Assembly (NCBI GenBank): GCA_048013815.1 | Contig: CM106585.1 | Span: forward strand, 21,700,001-21,764,000 | Direction of reading: 5' to 3' | Source: Setoptus koraiensis | Lineage: Eukaryota; Animalia; Arthropoda | Length of the DNA: 64,000 nt | Shown: positions 3,713 through 64,000 of the stretch, one piece after another | How positions within the stretch are numbered: position 1 is the stretch's first letter | Layout of the letters: every line of letters starts with the position of its first letter | Notes under the pieces: generated by a model | Database searches by the model: none | Told to the model about the DNA's origin: nothing | Seen by the model: the letters and a program-made list of their open reading frames with translations, nothing else | Made by a program: the position numbers and the translations under genes

Positions 3713-5711
3713 AACAGCTTGATAACAAGCTCTGTGTACCTTGTTGTAATTTATTTTCTAGTGCTGCCTTGAGACCAGCTCACAATGGAGCAAGTCAGAA
3801 CAATAACAACACCAGAAATAGCTCCAGCGGCACAACACAACAATAGAGAGTGGCTAACACCAAAATGCGACCAACAACAATGGCACAATATATACAAAAT
3901 GTATTACTTGCTTTGGGGCACTTTGTATACATCACTCTGTATAGTGACACACTGATGACGTAACCCTGCAACGCAAGTCGCCTCGGGTTATGTCATCGCT
4001 GTTGTTGGCGACAAGCTGACAATGCAATGGGCTCATTGCAACCACCAGCGTGACACAAACAGAAAGACCGATTTAAAACTAATTAATTATTACGTTTGTT
4101 TGGTGCATGAGTTTTGCTTGTAACGGGCGAAACAACTGGCCCAACCCGATACAGATATTAACCAGTTACAACCAGAAATACATGTAATTAACCGGTGTGC
4201 CAATCCAATTTATTCCATCAGGCGTTACCTCGTGATTCCGTTCTTGTCGCAGTGTGGCGATTAGAGCGCCTGAGCTTAGGTTAATCTTGTGAACTCAATT
4301 GAGCTCACAAGATAACTCACCAGCAACTTACCTGTGTTCGCTTCAATGATCTCTCATACTGCATGTAGCAGCCTCAGATATCGAGCGCCATTTTAGGCGC
4401 CTCTTCAGACGGCTGTACCGGTATAGGGTGCATGGAAACACTTTTATCTCTTTACCTGTGTCTCAGCACAGCATTGGCCCGCATTGATGTAGCCCCGACA
4501 ACGAGTGGTTAAAATGAAAATTAATTTGCAACAACGACAACGATTTTCATGATTCAGACCATCACAATGACAACAACAACTCATGACTGCAACCACCAAA
4601 TGCAACCTGCTCAACACACAACAAATACTCGAATGCCTCGAGTACAAACGACAGACGCTGCAAAATGATGATGCAAAACTCACTATTGTCATGTACGGGC
4701 CCCATTAATAGCGCAATAGTATGTAATAGCGCGCCCGCATAATAGCGCATTTTGTTCTCACTGGCGCCCAATAGACAACAAACAGACCTTTAGTACCCAT
4801 GTACTAAATAAACTAATGCCCAAATGTTTGTGTGTCACTTGATTATCACAACAACCGTTGAGCCAACCCAGCACAAAATATACATGTAAATATATTTTTG
4901 GCAGCCATTATATTCGGCTGTAACCAGACTGCTCGGTTCGAGGCGCTTACCTGTCCATTGAGGGTCTGTTCCATTTACGGTGTGAGTGTCGCTGCCATAC
5001 GTGAGCGTGGGTACGTTTCGGTTGCTTTGTTGGCCCCTTGCTCAGCGATGCCCAGAAATGCATTGCAAAAAATTAGGCTGGCTGGTTGGTTGGTTGACAG
5101 AAACGAATAGACGACAGAAATGGTGGCACAAATATGGCACAGAGACTCTCTCAGTCAGAGAGGATCTGATGTGAATGAGATTGAAAAATTGATTTCTGTC
5201 CCGGCGACTGTCATATTATTGTCACAGGTATGACTCGCTTTGCATGCCATGGCCCGTTTAAAAGAATCTTGAGCCGTCGTAGCAAACAAAGAGTTCAGTT
5301 ATAGAGTTTGTGACCATGGCTATATTTGGATGCCGAAAAAGAGGCTGAAACCGTGAGATGCACTCATTAAAGTTGCTAAACATCAATTGGTCTGGTTACG
5401 TTATGGCTTCATTCTCATAATAAGACTATCTCTCTTTCTGTGCGCGCTTGCAGTCAGTTTAAATAACTTATAACTCATGAAAATGAACGACTGACTCGCC
5501 TCGCTCTGTCAACATCCACTTTCATTATTATTGCAAACACACCGGAAAAGTGACAAAACAAACACAAGCGACGATCCACTGCCACCTTGTCTGAACGGAA
5601 TGCATTGTCCAAACAAACGCTGATGCAGTGTGCCCAAGCCGAGCTGCCTGAGCTAGCTGCCAGTTTGCAGCGTCATGGCTTGGCGAAAATTGACGCTGAT
5701 GCCGAGCGACA

Positions 5712-5743: not shown

Positions 5744-7049
5744 CTCTGGTTCGTCTAGTGACAGTACAGTTTATATTATTATACAATTTACGGTATTATA
5801 ATACTGTTATGCTCGCCCCCTCTTTGTTGGCCGGCAACGTCTGGCATGCACGCATTGTCAGTTGTGCCTGTTTGTGCTGGCTCAGACAAGTTGGCCCACA
5901 TTCTGACTTGCGGTTCGTCTCGCGCTGCTACCTAGCACGGCTACAATACTGATACATACGAGCTGTCTAACGGGCCTGTCACAAACAACACAAACTGCAC
6001 GTTCAAATTCTATCTTGCTCAACGGTGTCACTGTTTAAAACCAACACGACGGTCGGCCCTGTTTTGTTGCGCCAACAGGCGAGCGTCTAATATCTTTTTC
6101 ATGCAAAAGCACCCCCGACAACGCTGACTCGTTGCGTAATCTCCGGCCCTCTTCTATTACACCCACACATTGGCACACGAGCCATAAATCTAAATTTGTG
6201 CCGCCGACCAATCAGTGCACCTTGACCCCAATAAACGAAGCTGACAATGTCCACTGCTCGTGCCAGACAAACAAACAAACGAACGGGGCCAAATAAACAG
6301 GCACCAAGAAAAAAGATCCGGTCTGCATAAACACTTAGCTGCCGGTGTTCGCGCGCCAACTAACTCATATTATCTTTCTCACACACTCATAATACATCAT
6401 CTCATTACATAACAAACCCATCATGATGAGTTTTGTCAGTGCTAAGCTCATGCAAGTGTCCGATATCCGGTTGTTGCATCACTCGGTGGCTTATTGTTTG
6501 TTTGCATAGGCCGCACAGTTACACAGTGCAGTTTCAAGTGCTGTTTGCCAAATCAATGGCAGCGTGCACTGTGCCAATGTTGCACACTGTGCAGCAAAAT
6601 ATTTGAAAATTCAATCAGCTGTGTGTGGCGCAGATTGGTTGTTGTTGATGTTTGTGTGGTTGTCGTGGTGGTGGCCGTACACGGTGGTTGATGGATACAC
6701 ATTGGCACCACCGCACCATGCGTATCATTGGTATAGCTACAAAATGGGTGGATAGATGGATATTAATTAATATTATCATCACAAAAAACATTTTTTATTA
6801 ACATTGTTAGTGAATTTGGAGTATTTGTCACCACCTTTTACATGATAATATCGACAATTTTAACACAAACACACAACAGGCTGTACGCACAACAATTATT
6901 TCACCATCTTGTTATTCATCTCTGCCAATCGTTTCACTGCAACAACAATAACCACCAGATACAACAACTAAATCAACTACAGCAACAACCACAACAACCG
7001 ATTCACCCAATCTGTGTCTCACGCCAACAACAATATACAATATTCAAGC

Positions 7050-7628
7050 ATGGCCTCAGGCTCGGATAGAAACTCCATGGGCCCGCCAGGTCATCATCAA
7101 CATCAGCGCATCAGTGGTCACCATCATCAACAGCAGCATCTAATAACAACAACGATGCCGCAACCAGGCAATAGTTATATGAATCCCATCGGAACAACAA
7201 TCAACAATGGCGCCGCCAATAGTAGTAATCAATCATCCACATTGGCTAATATGCTACGCCCAAAGACTTTGAATAATATTCTCGCCAAGGCAAACACGGG
7301 CGGCGTCAAATGTACACTATTATTAAACAGAGAGGGCTCTTTATTGGCTTACGCCGGTGGAACTGATGAAGAGGCCATCACAACAGCCGCTTTAGCTAGT
7401 ACCATATGGAAAAATTTTGAAAAATATGGTAATTCGGCATTCCATGAAGATAAACTCAAATGCGCTGTCATTCAGTGCCAAGAGGCCAATCTGGTTGTCA
7501 GAAATTTGTCCACAGTGTTATTGTGCATCTACGCAAACCAAGATGTGCCATTGGGTATGCTCAAGAACAAGGCCAAGTGTCTTGCAGATTATATTGAAGA
7601 ACCCCTTGATAAGATTCTTAGGACTTGA
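7050..7628 (+). CDS. LAMTOR2: Ragulator complex protein LAMTOR2 (roadblock domain), single exon, with possible N-terminal H/Q/N-rich extension
   Basis: From ATG 7251 the ORF reads MLRPKTLNNILAKANTGGVKCTLLLNREGSLLAYAG...GMLKNKAKCLADYIEEPL, matching the LAMTOR2 signature (MLRPKALTQVLSQANTGGV...LLAYSG...GMLKAKAQAL..YLEEPL). The first in-frame ATG is at 7050; which start is used is uncertain. Confidence 0.95.
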   Translation: MASGSDRNSMGPPGHHQHQRISGHHHQQQHLITTTMPQPGNSYMNPIGTTINNGAANSSNQSSTLANMLRPKTLNNILAKANTGGVKCTLLLNREGSLLAYAGGTDEEAITTAALASTIWKNFEKYGNSAFHEDKLKCAVIQCQEANLVVRNLSTVLLCIYANQDVPLGMLKNKAKCLADYIEEPLDKILRT

Positions 7629-7654
7629 GTAAAGGTTATCGTTTTTTTTTTCAT

Positions 7655-8057
7655 TTAACATAAAGTCATATTCAACGAGGTTAACCGACAGTAGACCCCA
7701 TCGCTATTACCCTTTGCCAACAAGAATTCATCGCTGTCTACTCCAACTATCTTCAGCCTGCCCTGTTTATCGTCACCTATTTGATGTCTAGTATGAATCC
7801 GTCCAGGTGGCGAGCTCTGTTCGTTGTTCCTCTAACTCATGCCGTTTGTTTGTGTCTTGGCCAATACTATAGTATTTTTGGCATGTTGATTAGCGAGATT
7901 GAAAATGGATTACACAACATCTAAATATATATCTAAATATATCAAATATCGATATCTAAATATATATATAGCTGACGCAGTGATTTGGTCGTCAGCTTAG
8001 AGTTGTCTGTCCTCAAGTTGAAGGCCCACTGCTTTTGATCGTCGGATATTTGTCTCT
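7655..8057 (-). pseudogene. HLCS: Decayed, internally deleted copy of the biotin-protein ligase gene at 10269-11321
   Basis: Reverse-strand translation gives ...DVV*SIFNLANQHAKNTIVLAKTQTNGMS*RNNEQSSPPG|RIHTRHQIGDDKQGRLKIVGVDSDEFLLAKGNSDGVYCRLTSLNMTLC*. The C-terminal 47 aa are 37/47 identical to the intact gene by manual count. Lesions: two premature stops, a ~447-bp deletion (equivalent to ~10417-10863) and an ATCTAAATATAT repeat expansion at ~7917-7970. Confidence 0.95.
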
Positions 8058-8380
8058 AATTAAGCGTGGTTTTTTAGTTCGCACGGATTTCGTTTCCGCT
8101 GCGGTACGTCCGTATCGAATCTTCAGATCCAAGAGAGCACATGATGATATTTGAAGTGCGTGCCCAGCTATCGCCACTTGCAAACACACTTGTTTACCAC
8201 TTGTTCAAGTTGATCTCTTAAATCTTATCAACGTCAGCTGATCTTAGTAACAAGTGAGCCAAAAAGTTATCAACAGTGTCGATCTGGATAATACCAATAA
8301 ATAACAGTAACAATCATTCAGATATCAACTAGTTTAAAAGAAAATTCAAATTCAAATAAACGGATTATATTACATGTTTC

Positions 8381-10006
8381 ATGGTTAGTTATCAGAGACC
8401 TGAGTTACTTCAACAAGAAAAATGTCATTATATTATCAATAATCGTATATCCATATATCTCTTTTTGTTCTCCTGGGAGAAGGCTTTCATAGTGTCTGTG
8501 GCGAGAACTCCCATTGGAACGTTCTCCAGCGGTGCCTTGAATTCTCTTAGGGCCACACAATTGGGATCTATAGCGATTCGTGGTGCTCTAGATAGAGTGC
8601 AAATCAAGTATGAAGAAGTGCAAGAGGTATTCTTTGGCCAAGTTCTCCAAGCGGGAGCCGGTCAGGCGCCGGCTAGACAGGCCGCCTTGCACGCGGGCCT
8701 ATCTAAGTCAGTCATATGTTCAACCATCAATAAAGTTTGCGCCTCAGGTATGAAAGCCATAATGCTGGGAGCTCAATCTATCCAATTGGGCAGCATGGAT
8801 GTTGTTGTGGCTGGCGGCATGGAGTCCATGTCTCATGTGCCGAGATTTATGTCTAGAAACGTGCCAGCATATGGAAATGTAGAACTACTGGACGGAATAT
8901 TGTTAGATGGTTTGACGGACGCATACGACAAGTGTCACATGGGTATCTGTGCTGAGAACACGGCTGAAAAATTGAAAATAACCAGAGACCAACAGGATGA
9001 ATACGCTGAGGCCAGTTACAAACGAGCCAATGAAGCCAACAAATCAGGCATTTTAGCCAAAGAGATTGTTCCTGTTGAATTGTTACACAAAAAGGGCCAA
9101 CAAACCACAATTTTTGCTGAGGATGAAGAATTTAAAAAAGTTGACTTGTCCAAGCTCAAAAAGTTGAGGCCAGCTTTTAAAAATGACGGCACAGTTACGG
9201 CAGGCAATGCTAGCACTCTGAATGACGGAGCCGCTGCAACTCTATTAATGTCGGAATCTGCCATACAAAGACTTAATATCAAACCTTTAGCGCAGATTGT
9301 CGCATTCGCCGATGCCGCTTGTGATCCAATAGATTTTCCTTTGGCCCCCGCCCACGCTATTCCAAAAGTAGGTACTCTGATTGATCAGCTTTACTGTCTG
9401 ATGAATTTGCCTCACCACTCTAACTATTTGTGATCAAATATTAGCGAGTCGATGAATGATAATCAAAATGCTTTCTTCCCTCAACAAGGTATTGAAATTA
9501 GCTAAAATAACTGAGAATGATGTATCAATGTGGGAAATCAATGAAGCCTTCAGCACAGTTGTTTTGGCAAACATGAAACTTTTAAAACTTGATCATTCCA
9601 AAGTGAATATAAATGGTGGAGCAGTCAGCCTCGGTCATCCCATTGGGTAAGTACAAATCCAATAACTCACATTAATCCTTTATTAGAGCTGCCCATTGAC
9701 TATTGTGCATTTCTTTTGACAACAATCTTTTCTCTAATACTGTGTTACAATGACGCATTTGACAAACAAAAAACTTTATACAGGATGTCTGGAGCGCGCA
9801 TAGTAAATAGCTTGGCCCTGCATTTGAAACCTGGTCAATTTGGATGTGCAAGTAAGTATAGTATCTCAGATGAATGAAAATGATAATTATCATCAACCAA
9901 AGAATCCTTTAATCCAGCGTTTCGGTTTGTTTTCTTAACAATCTACTCCATAGGTATCTGTAATGGTGGCGGAGGAGCTAGTGCCATAGTGATAAAACGT
10001 TTATAA
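8381..10006 (+). CDS. ACAT1: Acetyl-CoA acetyltransferase (ACAT1/T2-type thiolase); exons 8381-8383(?), 8483-9367, 9489-9646, 9784-9851, 9954-10006; ~388 aa
   Basis: Thiolase motifs NKVCASG (catalytic Cys), NEAF, GHPIG (His) and [10 protein letters not shown] (Cys). GT-AG introns 9368-9488, 9647-9783 and 9852-9953 restore a continuous frame. The 5' end is uncertain: ATG|GTTAGT...AAG, 99-nt intron, with a GAG/AAG tandem acceptor. Confidence 0.93.
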
Positions 10007-10184
10007 ACACTGCGCGATACTTTCCATTGTACCGTATGAACGTAGAACAAATAAAATCTGTGTCTTTGATATTCTCTCTCATTCACCAATTCGTTTACCA
10101 GTATATACTAAATCTGTAGAACCTGCTCTTGTGGCGCCTGGAGTGAAGCACAATCATTGATAATAGGTCTCAATATGCATTGTG

Positions 10185-10240
10185 AATGTCCTTGGCTCCC
10201 ATATATTGAAGGAATCCTCCATGAGATTCAAAGGACCCGG
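10185..10240 (+). pseudogene. LAMTOR2: Remnant of the LAMTOR2 3' end
   Basis: 10202-10240 aligns codon-for-codon without indels to the last 13 codons of LAMTOR2 (YIEEPLDKILRT* vs YIEGILHEIQRTR). It is followed by the same AAAGGTTATCGTTTTT spacer seen at 7631-7646. Confidence 0.8.
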
Positions 10241-10255
10241 ACAAAGGTTATCGTT

Positions 10256-10261
10256 TTTATT
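10256..10261 (-). terminator. Candidate AATAAA polyadenylation signal of the intact HLCS gene
   Basis: TTTATT on + (AATAAA on -) lies within 10 nt of the HLCS stop. The equivalent site in the pseudogene copy (7641-7651) is a pure T run. Confidence 0.5.
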
Positions 10262-10268
10262 TTTTCAT

Positions 10269-11321
10269 TCAACATGGAGTCATATTCAACGATGTCAACT
10301 GACAGTAGACGCCATCGCTGATACGCTTTGCCAACAAGAATCCATCGCTATCTACTCCAACTATCTCCACCCTGCCCTGTTTATCGTCATCTACTTGCTG
10401 TCTAGTATGAATCCATCGGCTCATGTAATCTTGTTTTATATCTGGCAATGTGTCCTCAGTGAAATTAGTTATCATGTCTTCTAGCCTGTTGACTATCTTA
10501 GCAACTAGTTCATCAATTTCAACTTTAACATCAGACTCAAAATGAGCCAGTATGTCATTTATGCAGGTAGTTGGCTCCGAATTGAATACATTCAAACCAA
10601 AACTAGTTATTATAATGTATCTGTTTTCCTCGATGGTTGTTTTAATGAGAATGCCACCAATTTTGCACCTTTTACCTAACTCGTCCACGTAATAGATATC
10701 ATTTGGCCACTTTAACCGAATGTATTGCTTACCCAAGTATTGCTTACACGTATCCTCCAGAGTTCTCACAATGGCCAACGCCACAAGATGCTGAAGAAAG
10801 CTAATTCGTTTGCCCACAAACGAATCTTGTCTGCATTGCATTTTCATGGAGGCCATGGCACAACCAGGGGGCGAGGTCCATTGGTTGTTCCTCTGTCCCA
10901 TGCCGTTTGTTTGTGTCTTGGCCAATACTATTGTATTTTCGGCTTGTTGATTTGCGAGATTTACAGTGGAATCCACAACATCTAAATATATACAGGGTCG
11001 ACCAAGTGATTTGGTCGTCAGCATAGAATTGTATCTGTCCAAGTTGAAGGCATAATACTTCCGATCGTCGGATTTTTGTCTCTGAGAAACCATTGACATA
11101 ATGTCGGACTTGTTGTTGTTGTTCAATTTTGTCCGCAAGACGTAATAATTTCTTCTCTGGTTGCCGGTAGGGGTGAGTTCAACATTTGTGTGATAATTCC
11201 TCTTTGATAATGTCGGGAGAGTATTATTTCGGAATGGTGTGTAGTAGTGTGAGTTTGATATCTTGCCAGAATAGGAATGATTAAATGCGGCTTTTATTAA
11301 CAATGTGTTAGACTTATGCAT
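10269..11321 (-). CDS. HLCS: Biotin-protein ligase / holocarboxylase synthetase, intronless, 350 aa, essentially the catalytic core only
   Basis: BPL motifs VDST, QTNGMGQRNNQWTSPPGCA, LQHLVALAIV, LKWPNDIY, KIGGILI and GLNVFNSEPTTCINDI; the last four are eukaryotic HLCS-type. C-terminal SH3-like tail VEIVGVDSDGFL. Confidence 0.93.
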   Translation of the reverse strand: MHKSNTLLIKAAFNHSYSGKISNSHYYTPFRNNTLPTLSKRNYHTNVELTPTGNQRRNYYVLRTKLNNNNKSDIMSMVSQRQKSDDRKYYAFNLDRYNSMLTTKSLGRPCIYLDVVDSTVNLANQQAENTIVLAKTQTNGMGQRNNQWTSPPGCAMASMKMQCRQDSFVGKRISFLQHLVALAIVRTLEDTCKQYLGKQYIRLKWPNDIYYVDELGKRCKIGGILIKTTIEENRYIIITSFGLNVFNSEPTTCINDILAHFESDVKVEIDELVAKIVNRLEDMITNFTEDTLPDIKQDYMSRWIHTRQQVDDDKQGRVEIVGVDSDGFLLAKRISDGVYCQLTSLNMTPC

Positions 11322-11891
11322 TGAATTGACTAGGGTTGAATAGTAGAAGTAGTAATAGTGGTGTTAGGTGTAATGATGGCTTGCAATATTACATTATATC
11401 GGCCAGTGGTTGCAATGCTAGAAGAGGCTACACAATAAGAGAAGTGATAATAACGGTTGTTTTCAAACTTGAAACAAGATGCTAAAAGTTGTTGTTTGGT
11501 TGTTTATTCGGGACTTGCGTTGACGTAACTTCAAAATCAAGTGGCATGGTCATTTGTGCACAGACGCTCGCTCTCCACTCCTATCTCCCTGGAATAAAAT
11601 GATAGCTCATATGGGAGCTCCTCCGAAACTAGTACATACATTCCAATAATGATTGTCACAAATACTCGCTGAAAAATGCTTGATGAGTAGACACGTATGT
11701 CAGATACACCCTGGACTACATCGCAACCGTTTAAATGTTGATAGCCTTGTGGTGTTTACAATTGCCGAACCGATTTGATTTTGCAACTATACAACTCATA
11801 TTTTTTTATAACCGGAGGGAATCTCGTGATAGTTATTATTTTATTATTGAATTTTACTGGGACAAAATCAGTCCCACATCCGTCCTAAAAC

Positions 11892-13760
11892 ATGTCTGTG
11901 AGACCTCAAAGGCCAGAGCCCAAGGAAAAGAAGTTTTATCCCTTGTTCAATATTAAGCCATCTAGACCCAAAGGTGATATCGAGGTGATAGATCTCAGAG
12001 ATTGGAATGCTATTGACTTCAATAACGTTTCGGCTGTCCTTAAGGATGTCTTTGGACATGATAAATTTAGATCTAAGCTACAGAAGGACGCTTGCATGAG
12101 TGCCTGTCACACGAAAAAAGATTTATTTATTAGCTTACCTACTGGATCGGGTAAATCTCTCATCTATCAATTACCGGCGGTCTATCAGAACAAAGGCTTG
12201 ACCATTGTGGTGTCTCCCCTGGTTGCTCTCATAAACAATCAAATAGTAAACGCCCAAAGAATAGGGATACCATGTGCAACTATTAATTCTACTCTACCTG
12301 TGACACAAATTCGCAAAATTAGACAAGAGCTTATGGCCAAAGAGACTCCACTAAGATTGCTTTATGTTACACCTGAGATGTTGTGTTCCGACAGCTTTAA
12401 ATTTTATCTCTCCTCGTTGTATAAGACAAAACAATTGCGAATGTTTGCCATAGACGAGGCTCACTGTGTCTCTAGTTGGGGACACGAATTTAGACCAGAC
12501 TATCTCAAGTTAGGCTATCTGCGTAACCAATACCCAGATATCCCGATGATGGCTTTAACGGCAACAGCAACACCCAAAGTACTAGATGATATCATCGCCA
12601 ATCTGAAATTGGACGAACCACTTCGATACATTGCATCGTCCTTTAGAAAGAATCTCTTCTATGATGTTCAATTCTCTGATTCCCTTGAGAATGCCCTCTC
12701 AACCAACCTCAAAGACTTCATCCAAGATTGCTTAGGTCTACAGCTGACTGATGAGTCCACTCAAGTACCGAATCTCAAACGAAAACCAACTGCCTCGGAG
12801 GGTACACTATTTATGTCAGCCTCTTCTTTCGTTCCTTCTGCAAGTAAGTTGGCAAAGAAGGATCAAAAAGAAAGTAAATCTAAAGGAGTGGGCATCGTGT
12901 ATTGCCGAACCAAAGCAACTTGCGAAGATATAGCAGCTCAGCTAACTCGACAGGGTATCAAAGCGCGTCCCTACCATTCAGGGCTTGGTGCCAAGGAACG
13001 GAAAGAAATCGAAAGTCTTTGGATGAACGAAGATATACTTATCATTTGTGCTACAATCTCTTTTGGAATGGGCATAGATAAACCTAATGTCAGATTAGTG
13101 GTGCATTATAACATGTCGCAGTCTTTGGCTAACTATTATCAAGAATCTGGGCGAGCTGGTCGTGATGGCAAGCAGTCCTATTGCAGGCTTTATTTTTCCA
13201 ACACCGATTTGAATGCTATTTCTTACTTGTTGACGAAAGATATGGAGATGAATTCGAATGACGCTGTGGATAAGAATATTTCCCAAGAAAAGCAATTGCA
13301 GAAGACAAAGATAGCTAAAGCAGCTTATGAGCGCTTTGAGCGAATGATTGAATACTGTAAATCATCAGATAGATGTCGTCATTTGACACTAGCTAAAGAA
13401 TTTGCCCTCGGTGATGACGTTGATCTCTTGATAAACGGTTGTAAGACATCTTGTGACTATTGTACTAATCCAAAAGATTTAAAATCACGAGTAGAAAAAT
13501 CAACCGGTTGGAAAACGAGAATAGCCAATTCAAAACCTTGGGGTAAACCAATTCAAGATGAAGGTAATGTGTATTTGTCGAAATTTGACACATCTTACGA
13601 GGATCTTTATAGTTCAGAAACTAGGTATACTGGTGATCACGACGAAGACTCGGGCGGAGGTTTTAAATCGGCCTCGAGCTACACAAAAAAGAAGGCATCT
13701 AGTGGGTCTATGCTGGATGTTGTTAGAGCTGAGTTCGCCAAAAGAAAGAGATCTAGATAG
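11892..13760 (+). CDS. RECQL5: RecQ-family DNA helicase, RECQL5 type, intronless, 622 aa
   Basis: Walker A LPTGSGKS, DEAH box with SWGHEFRPDYLKLG, TATAT, FRKNLFYDVQF (RECQ5-typical), GIVYCRT, SFGMGIDKPNVR, YYQESGRAGRDG and Zn-binding CRH...GCKTSCDYC. Confidence 0.93.
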   Translation: MSVRPQRPEPKEKKFYPLFNIKPSRPKGDIEVIDLRDWNAIDFNNVSAVLKDVFGHDKFRSKLQKDACMSACHTKKDLFISLPTGSGKSLIYQLPAVYQNKGLTIVVSPLVALINNQIVNAQRIGIPCATINSTLPVTQIRKIRQELMAKETPLRLLYVTPEMLCSDSFKFYLSSLYKTKQLRMFAIDEAHCVSSWGHEFRPDYLKLGYLRNQYPDIPMMALTATATPKVLDDIIANLKLDEPLRYIASSFRKNLFYDVQFSDSLENALSTNLKDFIQDCLGLQLTDESTQVPNLKRKPTASEGTLFMSASSFVPSASKLAKKDQKESKSKGVGIVYCRTKATCEDIAAQLTRQGIKARPYHSGLGAKERKEIESLWMNEDILIICATISFGMGIDKPNVRLVVHYNMSQSLANYYQESGRAGRDGKQSYCRLYFSNTDLNAISYLLTKDMEMNSNDAVDKNISQEKQLQKTKIAKAAYERFERMIEYCKSSDRCRHLTLAKEFALGDDVDLLINGCKTSCDYCTNPKDLKSRVEKSTGWKTRIANSKPWGKPIQDEGNVYLSKFDTSYEDLYSSETRYTGDHDEDSGGGFKSASSYTKKKASSGSMLDVVRAEFAKRKRSR

Positions 13761-56100: not shown

Positions 56101-56786
56101 AAAGAATAGGGCGAGATAAAGCAGAGCGAGCCTGGCAAGACGGAACGCACGAAAAAATAGCAAGACATAGTCATATTAGTCTGGCGTGTCCCTCTATACA
56201 GGATATACAGATACAGGTACAGGTACGGGGAGATACAATCAAACATGTAGGCAAACGACTAGCGTGATAATGGTTATTTATTGCTTGCTTGCCTCTCGTT
56301 GATCTTCTCTCAAATCTTTTTTTTCTCGCCTTATCCCCTCGCTTCTCTCTTTTGAAATTCGCTCGCACACATCCTTAATCAAACCATGCCAAGTTTAATT
56401 TGGGAATTCTCAGGTCCCATTCATACTGAGACGTTTGTAGACAAGTCTACAGTGTAGAGCGAACGAGAGAGGGGGCACGGCTGAGCGCCCTCGGCGCTCC
56501 AATCTCGACCAATCAGCGCCCGTTAGTCGAGAGTTGTTGTTGTTGGCAGGTGCAAGGGACGCCGAGATGAATTTTTCTTTCAGGATTTTTCTCTCTCTCT
56601 CGAGAGAGAGAGAGAGGACCGCTCAATTGAGAGAGGATAGTTGAATCTGTGTGTGTAGAAAAAGAAAAAAAATCTGCCCTTTTGGGGCCTTTGTCGAGCC
56701 AGTTCCAGGTAACTAGAGGCGCTTTCACGCTGGCGAAATACGCTTTATTTATTTAGACCTTTTACACCGTTTCCTAGTGTGGGTGG

Positions 56787-59700
56787 CATGCGGGCGGCGT
56801 GACTGTCTGCTGGGGGGGGGTGGGGGGGTTGGGGTGTTCCTGGCTGAAATACGTCGGGCGGGGGGCTGGAGAGGTGGAGTGGTGCCTGTCATGGGCGGAG
56901 TTTGGTAATTGGGGGGGGCCACCCTTGGTGGGGGCTGGCTTCTGGTTGGGGGGCTTGTGGTCGGCTCACATTTGTGCGTTCTGGTCGTGTATGTTTGCGG
57001 GGGGAGTGCACAACGGGGAGGGAGAAGCGGCGCGGGTGAACATAGACCAATTTGGGGTTGATCAATATACATGGACGGGGGGGGTGGATGGCCGGGGCCG
57101 TGCGACTCAAGTGGCTGAGGGTGGTTGTGGAGGGGGTGGGTTGCTAAAAGTCAAACGAGAGGGAGAGTAAAAGAGAGTATAAGAAGAAAAGGTACAAGTA
57201 AGAAAAAAGAAGACTAGAAGCGTGGACAAGAAGGAGAGAGGCGAAACGAGAAAAGAGTAGTCAAACGCGAAAAGAGAGTCGCAGGAGCAACAAGAAACAA
57301 GAAAGAAAAGACGTAGGAGAAACAACGGAAACGAAAACGTGGCTCAAGGGTAAAGTAGAGACGAAGTGAGTTAAAGTAAAGGAAACAAGGAAAGAGGCAC
57401 TCAGCAGGTAAATGGAGGAGTGAAAGAGCGGAGGAAAAGGGAAGCAAAACACCACAACGAGTCAGGGAACACGGAGAGCACAGTAGCAGGCTACGAGAGA
57501 CAGGCAGTTGAAGAGAGAACGGAAGCTGAGGTAAAAGAACGAGGTGGAAAAGGACAAGGCAAAGAAGTGGTGACGAAGACAAACGAAAGTAAAGAGAAGA
57601 GGGAAAGTGCAAGTGAAAGTGAAAGTAGGTAGAGCAAGAGAGAGAAGGAAAAGTGAGCAGAATATAGAGTAAGGAAAGAGGAAGCAGTGGCAAATGGTAA
57701 AGAGGTAGAAAAGAGACATACAACAAAAAAGTTACGAGAATAAGAAGAAAAGGGAACGACCAGGTAGAGGGGCAGGGGAGTCAACGACATAAACGGTGAG
57801 GGATTCAAAAAAGAGAAACCAAAGGAAGATAATGATAAGACGAGAAAGGAGTAAGAGAAGAAAAAAATGAAGAAGTAACCGGAAGAAGTAAGGGAGGTAG
57901 GAAAAAAGGGGTCAGGAGGGAAGAGTAAAGTGTAAGGTGATGTAAAGAGATGAGAGCGTACAAGAACGGGAAACCGAACGACAGTACAAGTCACAAAAGA
58001 ACAAAGAGAAGAGTGAGAGAAAAGTGAGACTGGTAGGAGATATGGGGCAAGGAAAAAGGAGTTATCGTCAAAAGTTGAAATAAAAGTTCGAAGTAGGACT
58101 CTAAAAAAAAGTTATGAAAAAACGGAAAAGCGAAAGCTCAGTTCAGTTAGAAAGACAAAGCAAAACAAAGATAGAGGCTCGGTAACACCAACCACGAAAA
58201 GGGAAAATGAGTAAAAAGCGTGAGGGAGAACAGTACGTATAAAAAGAAAAAAAGATTGAGTAAAGTGACAAAGAAGTAAGGGGCAGAAAAAGGTAAGCAG
58301 AAATAGGAGAGTAGACAAAAACGTGTAAAGTATAGGCAGGGGAAGTAAAAAAAGTTAGTAAAACAAAGAGTGGGCGAGGGAATGCGAAAAAAAACGGAAC
58401 AAAGAAACGAGTAGAAAAAGGTGTGAGAGGAAAAGAAGGAGAAAAATTAAAGACGAAGGAGTAAAAAAGGTACTTCAAAGAAGGAAACGAAGAAAGGAAA
58501 GGCGAAGAGCAAGAAGCAGTACGAAGAACCGAAAAAGAGACGAAGGAAAAGAAAGAAAAGAATAACGGGAGTAAGTTAGAGAAAGGGGGGAATAAGAGGA
58601 GTAAGATTTGAAAAAGGATCAGGTGGAAAACAGAGTGGAAAGAGGAGAGGAAGAAACGAAGAGAAGTGAGAGAGTAAGTTGAAAAGTAAGACAAAGAGGA
58701 CTAAGGTCCTCGGAAGGTAGTAAAAAGAAGATAAGGAAGAAAGGTTAGACGAAACGGTAAGAAGGACGCAAGAACAGGAAAAGAACGAAAAAAGAGAAGA
58801 AGAAGGTACAGTTAGAAGGAGGGAAAAAGGAAACAGGACCGAAACGAGAAAGGTGAGGAGAGGAAGGCAGTGTAGGAGAGCTTGAGTCAGGCAGGAAAGT
58901 TTACGAGTGGGTAAAGAAGTAAGGAAAAGGCAAGGGGGAAAGAAGTACATAAGTGAAAAGTACAAAAGACAGAAGTAGCACGAAAAAGGCAAAGAGAGTA
59001 GGAGCCAAGTTAAGGTTAAAGGTTGAGAGAAGGGGACAGAAAAAAACGGCAAAGAGGGGTAGAAGGAGGCAAGTTAGACAGAAAGCGTGTAGTGAGACAA
59101 TGTAGGTAAAGTAAGGGGGTAGAAGCGGAGCGACGGGAAGAACAAAGGCAGGCAGTAAGTAGTGAAGATGACGAGAAGTAAAACATAGAAGGGAAACACG
59201 ATAAAGAGAAGAGGAGATAGAGAGTACGGAGAAACGGGGGAGGAGTTAGAGAGCAGAGGAGACCGAAGTGACCAAGAGAAGTAGGGAGAGAGGGCAAAGT
59301 GGGAGCACGTAAAGAAGTACGAAGGTGGGTGAAAAAAAAAGAGAGATAAGGGGTAGATCAAGAAAGTAAAAAAGAGTCGAACGCGTACAGTAGGAACGGG
59401 TACACACGAGGAAGACGGAAGACAGAAGGGAAACGTACAGAGAAACAGAAAAAAGCAGTTAGTTAAAGGAGGTGGGACAAAAAAAGAGAAATCGTAGAAA
59501 AACAACGGGAGAAGTTACAGAGTAGTACAAAAGAGCGTGAAGATAGGGTAAAAAAAGAACATAAACAAGACCAAAGGAGACGGCGTAAAAGAACATGTAA
59601 AGATCGGAAAAGTAAGGGCGAAGTAGAGAGCTGAGCAAACGAAAGAGGTTAACCAGAAACGGTAAGGGTCAAACAGGGAGAAAGAGAGGCAGCAGAAAAA

Positions 59701-62700
59701 TGAAGCGATAAGTGCGACTAAGTGCTAAGAGAAGAAAGAAGCGCAAACAAACCCACAACGCCAAGAAAAAAAACGGAATAAAGTAACGGGGAGAAGTAGT
59801 GAAAGAACGGGGAGGAACGTTAGGTAGAAGTAGAAGAGGGACCGGAGACACGTACACAGAGAGGATAAGAACAAAGTAGTGAAAAAATAGGAACGGAAAG
59901 GAGAGAAAAAAAAAAGGTCAGGAGACAGCACACAACAGTGAGACAATTAGGAAAGTGACGAGGGAGGAACAAGTAAAGGAGTACAGGAGAGGGTGAAAAC
60001 AAAGAAGTGAACTGGCAAAGGAGATTCCACTAGTAGAGGGAAAACGAGTAGAGACGTAAAAAAGTACACCCGGAAGAGAAAGATTTGAGAGGGCAAAACG
60101 TAGCGAGAGCGAGGCACGTAAGCGCGAAAAAGAAGAAAGAAGGAAGGGTGACAGGTAGACGACGAGCAACGCAAGTAAAGGTGAGAGAACGGATAATAGC
60201 GGTCGGTTAAAGCAAGACGACAGCGAGGGAAGTAGACGATCAAGCCGAAAAGCAGGAAAGTAAGAGTTAGAAAGTAGAGAGGAAGAACGTGAAGAGGTGC
60301 CTTAAGAGAAGAGAGAAAAGCACACAGGGATGAAGGAGAAAGGAACAAGGAAGAAGAGAACAGAAGTAGGAGCAAGGAGGAGGACGTAGTGGCGGCGATG
60401 GCGGAGTGGTGCAAGAGAGGCGAACGGCAGTAACTAGGAAAGAAACACAGGTGATGAGATCGTGCAAAGAAAGGAAGACAGCCGAGAACGTTAGTGGAGA
60501 AGGTACTAGTAAAGAAAGAATATATTGAGTCAGTTTAAGTATAAAACAGATTTTGAAGCAACGAGAGAAGGAACAAAAAAGAGAACGAAAGTAAAGAAAG
60601 GGGAAAAGGAAAAGAGTCAAGTGGAAGAGATATGAGTGTAGAACAGAAAAAGAGGAAGAAGAAAAATATGACAGACGTAGCTGAAAAAGAAGAAAAAAGG
60701 TGGATGAACAGTAAGGTAAGAAAAGAAGAAGCCAAGGCTGGAGTAAAGGCAGGTGGAGGAGGTAGTAAGTACGTGACGAGATTTTTATTGGGCCGGCCGG
60801 ACAAACGAAAAAAGGAGGAAGGGGGAAGGGAAGGAGAAGGAAAAAGTGTAAAGAAAAAAAGTGACGAAAGGAGGAAGTGAAAAGAAAAGAAGATGAGGAA
60901 GGAAACAAGCAGAGTGAAAACAAAGAAAGACGAAGAACAAGTAGTAGAGGAGAAGACGAAGAGTAAGAGTAGAATAAGTTGAAAAAAAATGTAGAAAAGG
61001 AAGTGGAGGCCAAGATGAAGCGGAAACGAAGGTCTAAGTTGAAGTAGAAAAGAATAAACAACAGTGGTATGGACGCAGTCAGAAAAGAAGAGAAGTGAAG
61101 GAGGAGTAAACAGAGGCAGGAGTAGCGGAAAAGAAAAAAAAACAAGAGAGGGGATGAAGGTGCAGGAAAAGGGGAGTGAGAAAAGTGCCAGGATGGGTAG
61201 GAAAAAGGAAGATAGGAAGTAAGGACAGAAAGGGAAGGAGCACGCAGAGGGTAAGGAGACCAAAAGAAAGAAAAGGAGAAAGACGTGGAATGAAGAAGGG
61301 AGTATGAGACGCACGAAGAGTGAAGTAAAAGGTGGGGACAACGTGCGGTGAAATGGAAGGGTATGGCGACAGGGGAGTAAGTAGAGGAAGGGAAAGGAAA
61401 ACACAACAACAACAAGGACGAAGAAACGACAAGAAGGAGAGAGTAAAAAAGTAAAGAACGTGAAGTAAAAGTAGAAAGAACAAAACGAGTGACGCAAACA
61501 AGACAGGAGGGGGAAGGTAAGTAAAGAAAGACAAGTAAGTCAGGGAAGAGAAGAAAAGAGAAAGGGAGGAGGTACAGGACATGTGGAAAAGTAAAGGAGT
61601 ACTGAGAAGAAGTACATTTGACCACCTTGAGTGAAAAACAACAGCAGTTGTCGAAAGTAAAGCAACAAAAAGTGAGAAGAGAATGAACACGAGAGAGACA
61701 GAGAAGGAGAGGGAAGGGGAAAGGAAAACAAAGTACAAAACAAAGCAAGGCAAGAAGGAGGAGAGAGGTAAGGAACAACAAGGCAACAAGAGTAGAAGGG
61801 AGGGTGAGATAATTGAAGAGGTGAGTAAGCAAGCTGGAAGGTTAAGGGGCGAGAAGAGAGAAAAACAGGAAAGGCCCAAAGAAAAGAAAGTTGGGAGAGA
61901 GGGAGTAAGGAGAACAGGCAGTAACAGGAAGGTGAAGGGAGACAGAATAAAGACAAACGGGAGTAAAAACGCCGGCGGACAAGGTTTAACAAAGACAAGA
62001 AACTTGCGAAAAGTCAAGAAGGCGGCTTGAAAAGAAGGGAGACAAAGGAAAACGCAAGGAAAAAAGAGGGGAGCAAGCAGAAGCGGAGAAGCAGAGAAGG
62101 AGAAAGGGAGGAGTGAAGTGGAAACACGGAGAAGAAGACCTTAGTAAGAAAAAAGAAACTAGGACACAGGAGTAGTGGGACAAGTTACGTGACAGAAGAC
62201 GGGTGGGGAGGTTGAAGAGAAGAGAACAGTAAAGAATGAACCAGCAGATTTTTGAAGGCACAAAACGTAAAAGAGTTAAGGTAAGGAGGAACAAGGTGTA
62301 AACCAAGACTAAAAGCAGAAAAAAAAAAAAGACAAAAGGAGAGAACGTAAGAGGTATATAGTGACATTGTGTTGCGACGTGGCGGAGACCACAGTCCCAA
62401 CCCGGAAATGTGAGAGCAGAAGATAAAGTAAGTGTGAAGAAAAATGATGGAGTAGCGAGCGCTCGGAGTCCGGAGAAAAGTGAAGAGAACAAAAGATGTA
62501 AAAAAGAAACGAAGAGAAAGAAAAAAGGAGTAGAAGGAAAAGTACAAAGGAGAAAGAGAGGGGAGACGAAAACAGTAAGAGTAAAAGCGAGAAGGGACAG
62601 CGTAGAAACAAGAAGTAGTAGGGGATGGAACAAGAAAAAAGGAGGCACAAAAGAAGAAGATTTAAAGAAGGTAATAAAAAGAAAAGTGTTGAGCGGAGCT

Positions 62701-64000
62701 AAAGGGGAAACAAGGTAAAGAAGGGAAAAAGTATAGAGAAGAGGGGATGGTTACGAACGGAAGACAGATAAAAGGCTAAAGGAGTAGGAGCAGGAAAGGA
62801 GAAAGTACAGGGAAAACATCTAAACAAGGAAGAGGGAGGAGGTGAAGTAACGCAAGAAGAAAGTGAAGTAGAAAGTGAAAGGGAGAGGTGAAGGACTAGA
62901 CGAAGGAGTAAAAAAAAAGTAAGCAGAGAGATGGTAAGAAGTCAAGAGGGAACGAGTATAAAGCAAAAGCTAGTAAAAAAGACAAGGTCATGAAGTAAGT
63001 GAGAAACGAGGAAGGTAGTACGGGAAGAGGCGAGTAAGAAAGTAAAGAGGAGGAAGATTGAGGAAAAAGAAGTAAGCGGTAGAGAAGTGAGAAAGTACAG
63101 GGAGGGTGAGAAGTTGAGGAAAGTAACAAGCCAAAAACACGTAGTGAAGGTTAGCCAAGAGAGAAGAGTAAGTAAAAGAAGAGAACAGTAAAGGTGTCGC
63201 AAACGTAGGAAAAGAAGCACAGGAAGGAGTGAAAAGAGTGGAGGCAAAAAGGTGGAGGCGTGGATTAAAGGAAGAAGAAGACAAAGCAGGAAGGGACTAA
63301 TAGTGTAGAGGAGAGAAACAAGAGTGATCGAGGATAAGTAAACGGGATAAAGAGAGAGAAGAAAAAGCGTGAAGTAGCGAGACAATGGTAAAGTGAACAA
63401 AGAGTAGGAAGTGGGATAAAGTGAAACAGTTAAATTTATGAGAGGGGTCAGGTAAAGAGAGAAAAGGGTAAGGGACTTGAACTACAAAACAAAAAAGAAA
63501 CGGAAAGGGAACACTAAGGAAAAGGAAGCAGAAAAAAGCACGGCAGAAGGAGTAGGGAGTAAGCGTAAAGTGACAGGAGTGAAAGTAGGGTACAGAGTAG
63601 ATAGCCGGTGGTAGTGTTAAAGGAGTGGGAAGAAAAAAGATGAAAGAAAAGAAAAAAGGGAAATATAGAGCGAGAAACGGGCAGTAAAAGGGTGGAGAAG
63701 TTAAGACAGAGAAAGAAAGCAGTACGGAAAGTGAAAGTCACGAAAAAGCGAAAGATGTGTATAAAGACAAGGGAGGAACAACAAAAGAAAAAGGAAAAAA
63801 GGGGCAGTAAAAACTGAGAATCAGGGTAATTATTTTTGAGCCAAGAAGAGGCTGAGAAAGGAGGCGCACAGAAAAAGGAAAGAATTTTTGTTTAGGATAT
63901 TTTTTTGAGCTGGAAAAGAGGGAGGGAAAGTAAAGTAAGATTAAAAGAAGGAGAAAAATGCGTGAGAAAGGCGGCTAATGTACAGAGATAACAAGGAGCA
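56787..64000. other. Aperiodic G-rich then A/G-rich low-complexity tract, probable sequencing/assembly artefact
   Basis: Line 58441-58500 is 50/60 purine (35 A, 15 G). There is no repeat unit, T occurs mostly as GT and C mostly as AC/GC, and onset is abrupt after long G runs at 56812-56834. Confidence 0.75.

Follow-up and report, generated by a model that had tools for sequence, protein, structure and literature searches.

How did a complete thiolase gene come to lie between LAMTOR2 and a biotin protein ligase (BPL) gene, with a broken piece of the BPL gene beside LAMTOR2 and a stub of LAMTOR2 beside the intact BPL gene? The question is raised by a locus in the genome of Setoptus koraiensis, which we take to be an eriophyoid (gall or rust) mite. 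The locus lies within the window, by which we mean the whole 64-kb stretch of DNA that was analyzed, located at 21.70 Mb on one of two contigs that make up the 48.76-Mb genome. The assembly of this species consists of two chromosomes and has a scaffold N50 of 24.53 Mb (PMC11920263). A preliminary description of the window had explained the arrangement by duplication of the LAMTOR2/BPL pair followed by reciprocal gene loss. Local duplication of a block made up of the LAMTOR2 tail, a spacer and BPL sequence is borne out by our analyses; whole second copies of the genes, and their reciprocal loss, are not. In our judgement it is moderately probable that the thiolase segment was copied into the convergent LAMTOR2/BPL junction, that a long stretch of the target was duplicated along with this, and that the donor was lost later.

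The duplicated block and its relics

LAMTOR2 (7254-7628, plus strand), the thiolase gene (8381-10005, plus strand) and the BPL gene (10269-11321, minus strand) are all intact and follow each other in this order. Repeat detection was run on the window, paired copies were aligned by a gap-aware procedure with affine-gap scoring, and the uniqueness of the repeat, the insert and the genes was judged by searching the whole 48.8-Mb genome. The edges of the repeat were examined by scoring the flanks beyond them against shuffled sequence. Together, these analyses delimit a block that is present twice in direct orientation: a left copy, D1 (7590-8058, 469 bp), and a right copy, D2 (10202-11084, 883 bp). 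Each copy contains the last 13 codons of LAMTOR2, a spacer of 26-28 bp (26 bp in D1) and BPL sequence running from the stop back to codon 78, which in D1 is a dead fragment.

The two copies are 77-89% identical across four paired pieces, all of them direct: 7590-7645 with 10202-10257 (77%), 7646-7802 with 10260-10416 (89%), 7803-7931 with 10864-10992 (87%) and 7974-8058 with 11000-11084 (78%). Their raw divergence is about 15%. Positions 10417-10863 (447 bp, or 149 codons) are absent from D1, and at 7932-7973 D1 has a TA-rich slippage expansion of 42 bp, against 7 bp in D2. When the whole genome was searched with D1, the sole other matches were two pieces of D2 (E = 3e-62 and 9e-39), and D1/D2 is the only direct repeat of the window outside low-complexity sequence. 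The preliminary description had therefore seen the block correctly as occurring twice, at coordinates that are essentially right, as is its figure of ~447 bp for the deletion, with a complete ACAT1-type thiolase gene between the copies. We also agree with its reading of the left copy as intact LAMTOR2 with dead BPL, and of the right copy as intact BPL with only a stub of LAMTOR2, for which its size of ~50 bp comes close to the 13 codons that we read. The same junction, with 26-28 bp between the two stops, is found in either copy, and LAMTOR2 and BPL must therefore have abutted tail to tail before the duplication, as the preliminary description had likewise concluded.

The similarity between D1 and D2 stops exactly at 8058/11084 and at 7590/10202, the junctions with the thiolase segment. 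No LAMTOR2 sequence scoring above shuffled sequence was found to the left of 10202, which is the edge of the remnant; an extension to 10185, as first proposed, does no better than shuffled sequence. Nor did any BPL 5' end score above that level to the right of 8058. No similarity was detected between 8060-8380 and 11086-11891, and no thiolase relic scored above shuffled sequence either upstream of LAMTOR2 or between BPL and the helicase gene that follows it, which we take to be RecQ5-like. The whole genome contains no second LAMTOR2, no second copy or relic of the thiolase gene and no further pieces of BPL.

The BPL fragment in D1 (7655-8058, minus strand) was recognized by six-frame matches, interrupted by stops, to codons 303-350, 111-152 and 78-107 of the 350-codon parent. 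Its stops fall at codons 80, 117 and 143, it carries a frameshifting insertion (net +35 bp), and it lacks the first 77 codons, the 5' end and the promoter; the 447-bp deletion takes out the KWPND active-site region. Besides these disabling lesions, its similarity to the right-hand copy runs on into the spacer and the LAMTOR2 tail. The same residue is specified in 88 of the 121 codons that can be compared with the intact gene. Nucleotide differences number 20, 16 and 19 at codon positions 1, 2 and 3, respectively, and the pairwise ratio of nonsynonymous to synonymous substitution rates (dN/dS) is 0.77. Amino-acid changes were polarized with two proteins, P0001, which is the 88% identical BPL of a sister species, and P0002, which is 67% identical. 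With P0001 as the outgroup, 24 unique changes fall on the relic and 3 on the intact copy (p = 5e-5); with P0002, the numbers are 19 and 2. Constraint is relaxed on the relic branch only. By these sequence features, the fragment is a partial unprocessed pseudogene that is decaying. A retrocopy, or processed pseudogene, was ruled out: the relic holds the neighbour's tail and the spacer in their original arrangement, and the inserted thiolase gene keeps its introns.

The LAMTOR2 tail remnant in D2 (10202-10240, plus strand) is 39 bp long and spans 13 codon positions, of which about half are changed; the position of the stop now reads CGG. The genuine tail of LAMTOR2 does not differ from that of the sister species, so these changes lie on the D2 remnant. 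The AATAAA signal of the BPL gene is found on the minus strand at 10256-10261, immediately beside the remnant, which probably acts today as the 3'-terminal region of BPL transcripts. One derived residue is common to the intact and the dead BPL, and none is common to the intact BPL and its sister-species counterpart; these counts, which are too small to rely on, weakly suggest that the duplication took place after the split from the sister species.

The segment between the repeats and two further loci of the same build

The segment between the repeats, M (8059-10201, plus strand), begins with 322 bp upstream of the thiolase gene, continues with that gene in full and with its 3' end, and includes a junction filler. 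It is single-copy in the genome apart from this filler, a sequence of 61-67 bp at 10108-10174, just inside the junction of M with D2. The filler is 81-88% identical to a 126-bp coding tandem repeat within an open reading frame of 708 codons on the same chromosome, 5.4 Mb away (G000:C1:16284942-16285375; C1 and C2 are the two chromosomes of the genome, G000, and L095-L098 are other loci of that genome). Four units of this repeat were matched, with E values from 5e-11 to 3e-12, and the divergence of the filler from its source is about equal to that between D1 and D2. We read 10108-10174, from its sequence, as probable templated filler. The open reading frame that contains the source (L095:1069-3195, G000:C1:16284568-16286694, minus strand) would encode a low-complexity protein of 708 amino acids and has coding tandem repeats of 126 bp (42 amino acids) and 93 bp.

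Capture of the thiolase gene by a transposon was considered and ruled out. There are no element ends, repeat detection found no inverted repeats at the M boundaries 8059 and 10201, M is single-copy, and the flanking duplication measures 883 bp rather than a few bp.

Direct repeats enclosing an insert are present at this locus and at two others. At positions 4012-6206 of L096 (G000:C1:5240011-5242205), direct repeats of about 190 bp that are 96% identical flank a 1.8-kb insert. The neighbouring genes are convergent: a plus-strand gene ends at 4019, and a minus-strand gene occupies 6140-7663. At positions 2385-8478 of L097 (G000:C2:16290884-16296977), the direct repeats are 1,054 bp long and 100% identical, and they flank an insert of 3,986 bp that carries a complete open reading frame for a DnaJ protein of 688 amino acids. 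Over 3,990 bp, this insert matches positions 3456-7431 of L098 (G000:C1:4808955-4812930) on the other chromosome at 98.8% identity, and that donor locus is without the flanking repeat. The repeat of L097 spans the 3' ends of a plus-strand and a minus-strand gene, and the spare copies of both convergent genes are cut off at the junctions although the repeats are still identical. Its junctions show microhomology of 0 and 2 bp and no filler. An oddity of L097 is that the flanks are 100% identical yet the insert is 1.2% off its donor, which might reflect gene conversion between the flanks or assembly polishing.

The three loci are thus built alike: two convergent genes, a block duplicated so that each copy spans the two 3' ends, an insert separating the copies, and one gene left whole on each side. 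Because the spare copies at L097 are truncated while the flanks are 100% identical, truncation comes with the event and not through later loss. The anatomy of the thiolase locus, the decay of its relics, its filler and the recurrence of the build in the genome are direct observations.

Origin of the arrangement

The course of events that we favor would start with LAMTOR2 on the plus strand and BPL on the minus strand, tail to tail, with their stops 26-28 bp apart. A repair- or replication-based event would have placed a 2.1-kb segment, comprising the whole thiolase gene and the sequence that belongs to it upstream and at the 3' end, at this junction. In the same event, a target stretch of 883 bp (13 LAMTOR2 codons, the spacer and BPL codons 78-350) would have been duplicated, leaving one copy on each side of the insert, and a short copy of part of a gene that lies 5.4 Mb away would have been trapped at one junction. 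Thanks to the duplicated target, LAMTOR2 would run on into the left copy and BPL into the right one, so that neither resident gene was broken. The spare BPL fragment, promoterless and 5'-truncated, and the 39-bp LAMTOR2 tail would have been dead on arrival and would have decayed neutrally to a divergence of about 15%. A two-step variant, in which an 883-bp tandem duplication came first and an insertion at its junction followed, would lead to an identical structure. Neither the one-step nor the two-step variant requires that whole genes were lost reciprocally, because in both of them the relics would be incomplete from the start. The thiolase segment was most likely copied, by analogy with L097, from an older locus that was lost later, the net result being relocation of the gene. 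We infer the direction of the event, its being a single one and the loss of the donor from these comparisons. The earlier suggestion that the thiolase gene had been placed in a new promoter context, head to head with the dead BPL copy, finds no support, since that copy has neither a 5' end nor a promoter and the thiolase gene brings its own 322 bp of upstream sequence.

Several points weigh against insertion with a long target duplication as the origin of this locus. A donor copy exists for the L097 insert, and for the thiolase segment neither a donor nor a relic of one is present anywhere in the genome; because of this absence, the term copied in is taken over for the thiolase segment from the L097 analogy. 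The duplication is far longer than the preservation of two 3' ends requires, and the divergence of ~15% leaves any junction microhomology illegible here. In addition, the sole outgroup locus obtained, the mite-like contig L015 from a metagenome of the Joint Genome Institute (JGI), has a BPL that is 44% identical and unrelated neighbours, and it is too distant to polarize the gene order. Its BPL gene is accompanied by genes for SDA1, Rpb8, NEMF and liprin, and no LAMTOR2, thiolase or RecQ5 gene is found within 10 kb of it. The sister-species orthologues sit on contigs of 16,738 bp (BPL), 8,672 bp (thiolase) and 1,413 bp (LAMTOR2), possibly from more than one assembly.

The alternative closest to the preliminary description is tandem duplication followed by random loss, which we regard as rather unlikely. 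Here, an ancestral LAMTOR2-BPL-thiolase block would have been duplicated from a breakpoint in the LAMTOR2 tail, after which copy 1 lost the BPL 5' end and copy 2 the whole thiolase gene, two full BPL genes having been redundant for a time. Tandem duplication is the commonest kind of duplication, only a single new junction would be needed, M/D2, which is where the filler sits, and deletion has been active at this locus, as the 447-bp loss in the dead BPL copy illustrates. On the other hand, this course takes at least three events, including two deletions that end exactly at the present junctions, and it is less economical. It would also have to account for the missing similarity between 8060-8380 and 11086-11891 and for the missing thiolase relic between BPL and RecQ5. 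No relics of complete second gene copies were found beyond the repeat edges, which complete deletion could also explain. The reciprocal loss that had been proposed is further weakened by the similarity ending exactly at the junctions, with nothing beyond them, and by L097, whose spare copies were truncated from the outset and whose insert came from another chromosome, which tandem duplication cannot deliver.

Could the second copy be false, the product of a haplotype mis-join or another mis-assembly? The genome is probably a noisy-long-read assembly (continuous long reads, assembled with Flye) with Hi-C scaffolding (PMC11920263), which counts in favor of an error. We nevertheless hold an artefact to be highly improbable: the copies are 11-23% apart and differ by the 447-bp deletion and the 42-bp expansion, the flanks differ on both sides where haplotigs would be near-identical and collinear, the window is free of N gaps, and the changes fit pseudogene decay as polarized by the outgroup proteins. 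A different kind of alternative is that the dead BPL fragment has been kept for a function, as a 3' untranslated region or terminator of LAMTOR2, or as antisense sequence that could pair with BPL mRNA. The first canonical AATAAA past the LAMTOR2 stop lies at 8296, beyond the fragment, so that the transcript may run through it, and the best-kept piece (89%) adjoins the LAMTOR2 stop. Yet the 447-bp deletion, the microsatellite expansion and the evenly spread substitutions look neutral, and the differences in identity among the pieces come from small counts; we consider a retained function improbable.

Genes of the locus and comparison with known rearrangements

LAMTOR2 (Ragulator p14), BPL and the ACAT1-type thiolase each match their family over the whole domain. 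LAMTOR2 is a single-exon, single-copy gene with its ATG at 7254 and its stop at 7626-7628; it contains the Pfam domain Robl_LC7 and aligns with LAMTOR2 chains in the PDB across residues 1-121, i.e., its whole length (E = 2e-37). Its 124-residue core is 100% identical in the sister-species protein P0241. Upstream of the conserved start, the frame is open for 80 codons (7014-7253) that are rich in His, Gln and Asn. P0241 likewise has an open, diverged upstream extension of 66 amino acids, and the length differences preserve the frame; the orthologues of more distant mite-like relatives are 131-142 amino acids long. The upstream frame may be a lineage-specific N-terminal extension or merely an open 5' leader.

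The thiolase gene encodes the Pfam domains Thiolase_N and Thiolase_C of an acetyl-CoA acetyltransferase. Its structure was read from splice sites in the sequence, and exon 2 was used as the query in the homology search. The main exons are exon 2 (8480-9367) and exon 3 (9489-9647); two short exons lie within about 9785-10002, followed by the stop at 10003-10005 and an AATAAA at 10050. Alignments to full-length homologues cover residues 15-403 of 403; the sister-species thiolase, P0121, is 85% identical, and the nearest paralogue in the genome is 52% identical. The start of the gene (8381-8479) is apparently an ATG with a GTTAGT donor directly behind it, in which case exon 1 would consist of the start codon alone. 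The best named relatives are annotated as "acetyl-CoA acetyltransferase, mitochondrial". The predicted protein is without a long mitochondrial presequence, and the N-terminus of P0122 is likewise very short. The label mitochondrial would accordingly come from the named relatives only, as no long presequence is seen.

The BPL gene encodes a protein of 350 amino acids that matches PF03099 and biotin ligases in the PDB, and it is the sole intact copy in the genome. Apart from the two proteins of 88% and 67% identity, its relatives include about 25 short mite-like ones at 41-47%. It has no N-terminal BPL_N domain, and because of this absence from the predicted protein, HLCS, the name used in the preliminary description, is a functional label only. 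At about 250-350 amino acids, the BPLs of this mite and its relatives are short and lack BPL_N, and longer eukaryotic biotin ligases among the same matches carry it (PF09825). In L015, the BPL gene (10001-10804) is wedged between Rpb8 and NEMF, with no space for further exons. The RecQ-family helicase gene (11892-13760, plus strand; Pfam DEAD, Helicase_C and RecQ_Zn_bind) adjoins the BPL 5' end and forms the right-hand limit of the locus. Elsewhere in the window, at 56500-64000, the plus strand consists nearly entirely of purines over more than 7 kb (GC skew +0.55, AT skew +0.6); Tandem Repeats Finder did not call this region as a tandem repeat at score 200.

The locus reveals no new kind of biological system; it is an ordinary but unusually legible rearrangement scar. 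It resembles the partial unprocessed pseudogenes, "dead on arrival", found at the edges of segmental duplications, in that the BPL copy includes the spacer and the neighbour's tail and is cut at the edge, and in that the fragment is promoterless, lacks its 5' end and has stops, indels and a relaxed substitution pattern. Unlike in those cases, two reciprocal partial copies here flank an inserted whole gene between convergent genes. Ranz and colleagues reportedly described, in PLoS Biol in 2007, breakpoint duplications arising from staggered breaks in Drosophila rearrangements. As there, partial gene copies of hundreds of bp are present at both junctions, without transposons or repeats, and the genes at the breakpoints are preserved; the Drosophila copies are inverted and flank inversions, whereas those described here are direct and surround a non-inverted inserted segment.

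Templated insertions and template switching are known from end joining with filler DNA and from fork stalling and template switching (FoSTeS) and microhomology-mediated break-induced replication (MMBIR). The likeness consists in a distant segment inserted with microhomology of 0-2 bp (L097), in filler from a third locus at one junction (the thiolase locus) and in re-copying of the target. We know of no enzymology of templated insertion or template switching in mites. The tandem-duplication-random-loss model of gene-order change is best known from mitochondrial genomes. It shares with the present case a changed gene order and pseudogene relics between genes; in that model, whole redundant copies are lost afterwards, whereas here there is no evidence of whole copies, and the donor of L097 is inter-chromosomal.

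That three cases fall at convergent junctions points either to a preference for such sites or to survivorship, given how densely the genome is packed with genes. We tentatively propose, as a possibility that we would not yet call probable, that one recurrent mode of rearrangement has given rise to at least three loci, the thiolase locus being the oldest. In this mode, a gene-bearing segment would be copied into a convergent junction with duplication of 0.2-1 kb of the target, which lets both resident genes survive; once the donor is lost, the mode would have moved genes and drawn overlapping 3' ends apart. If so, it could be a principal way in which gene order changes in streamlined mite genomes. 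Convergent junctions might then be preferred for mechanistic reasons, such as breakage or stalled forks at sites of converging transcription, besides survivorship. With divergences of about 0%, 4% and 15%, the three loci form an age series from which one could determine by what mechanism such insertions arise, how often they do so and what becomes of them; for arthropods with streamlined genomes, a series of this kind is of use in explaining changes in gene order and the removal of pseudogenes. The scar described here legibly records the placing of a gene between two abutting neighbours, neither of which was harmed, in a genome that ranks among the most compact known from animals.

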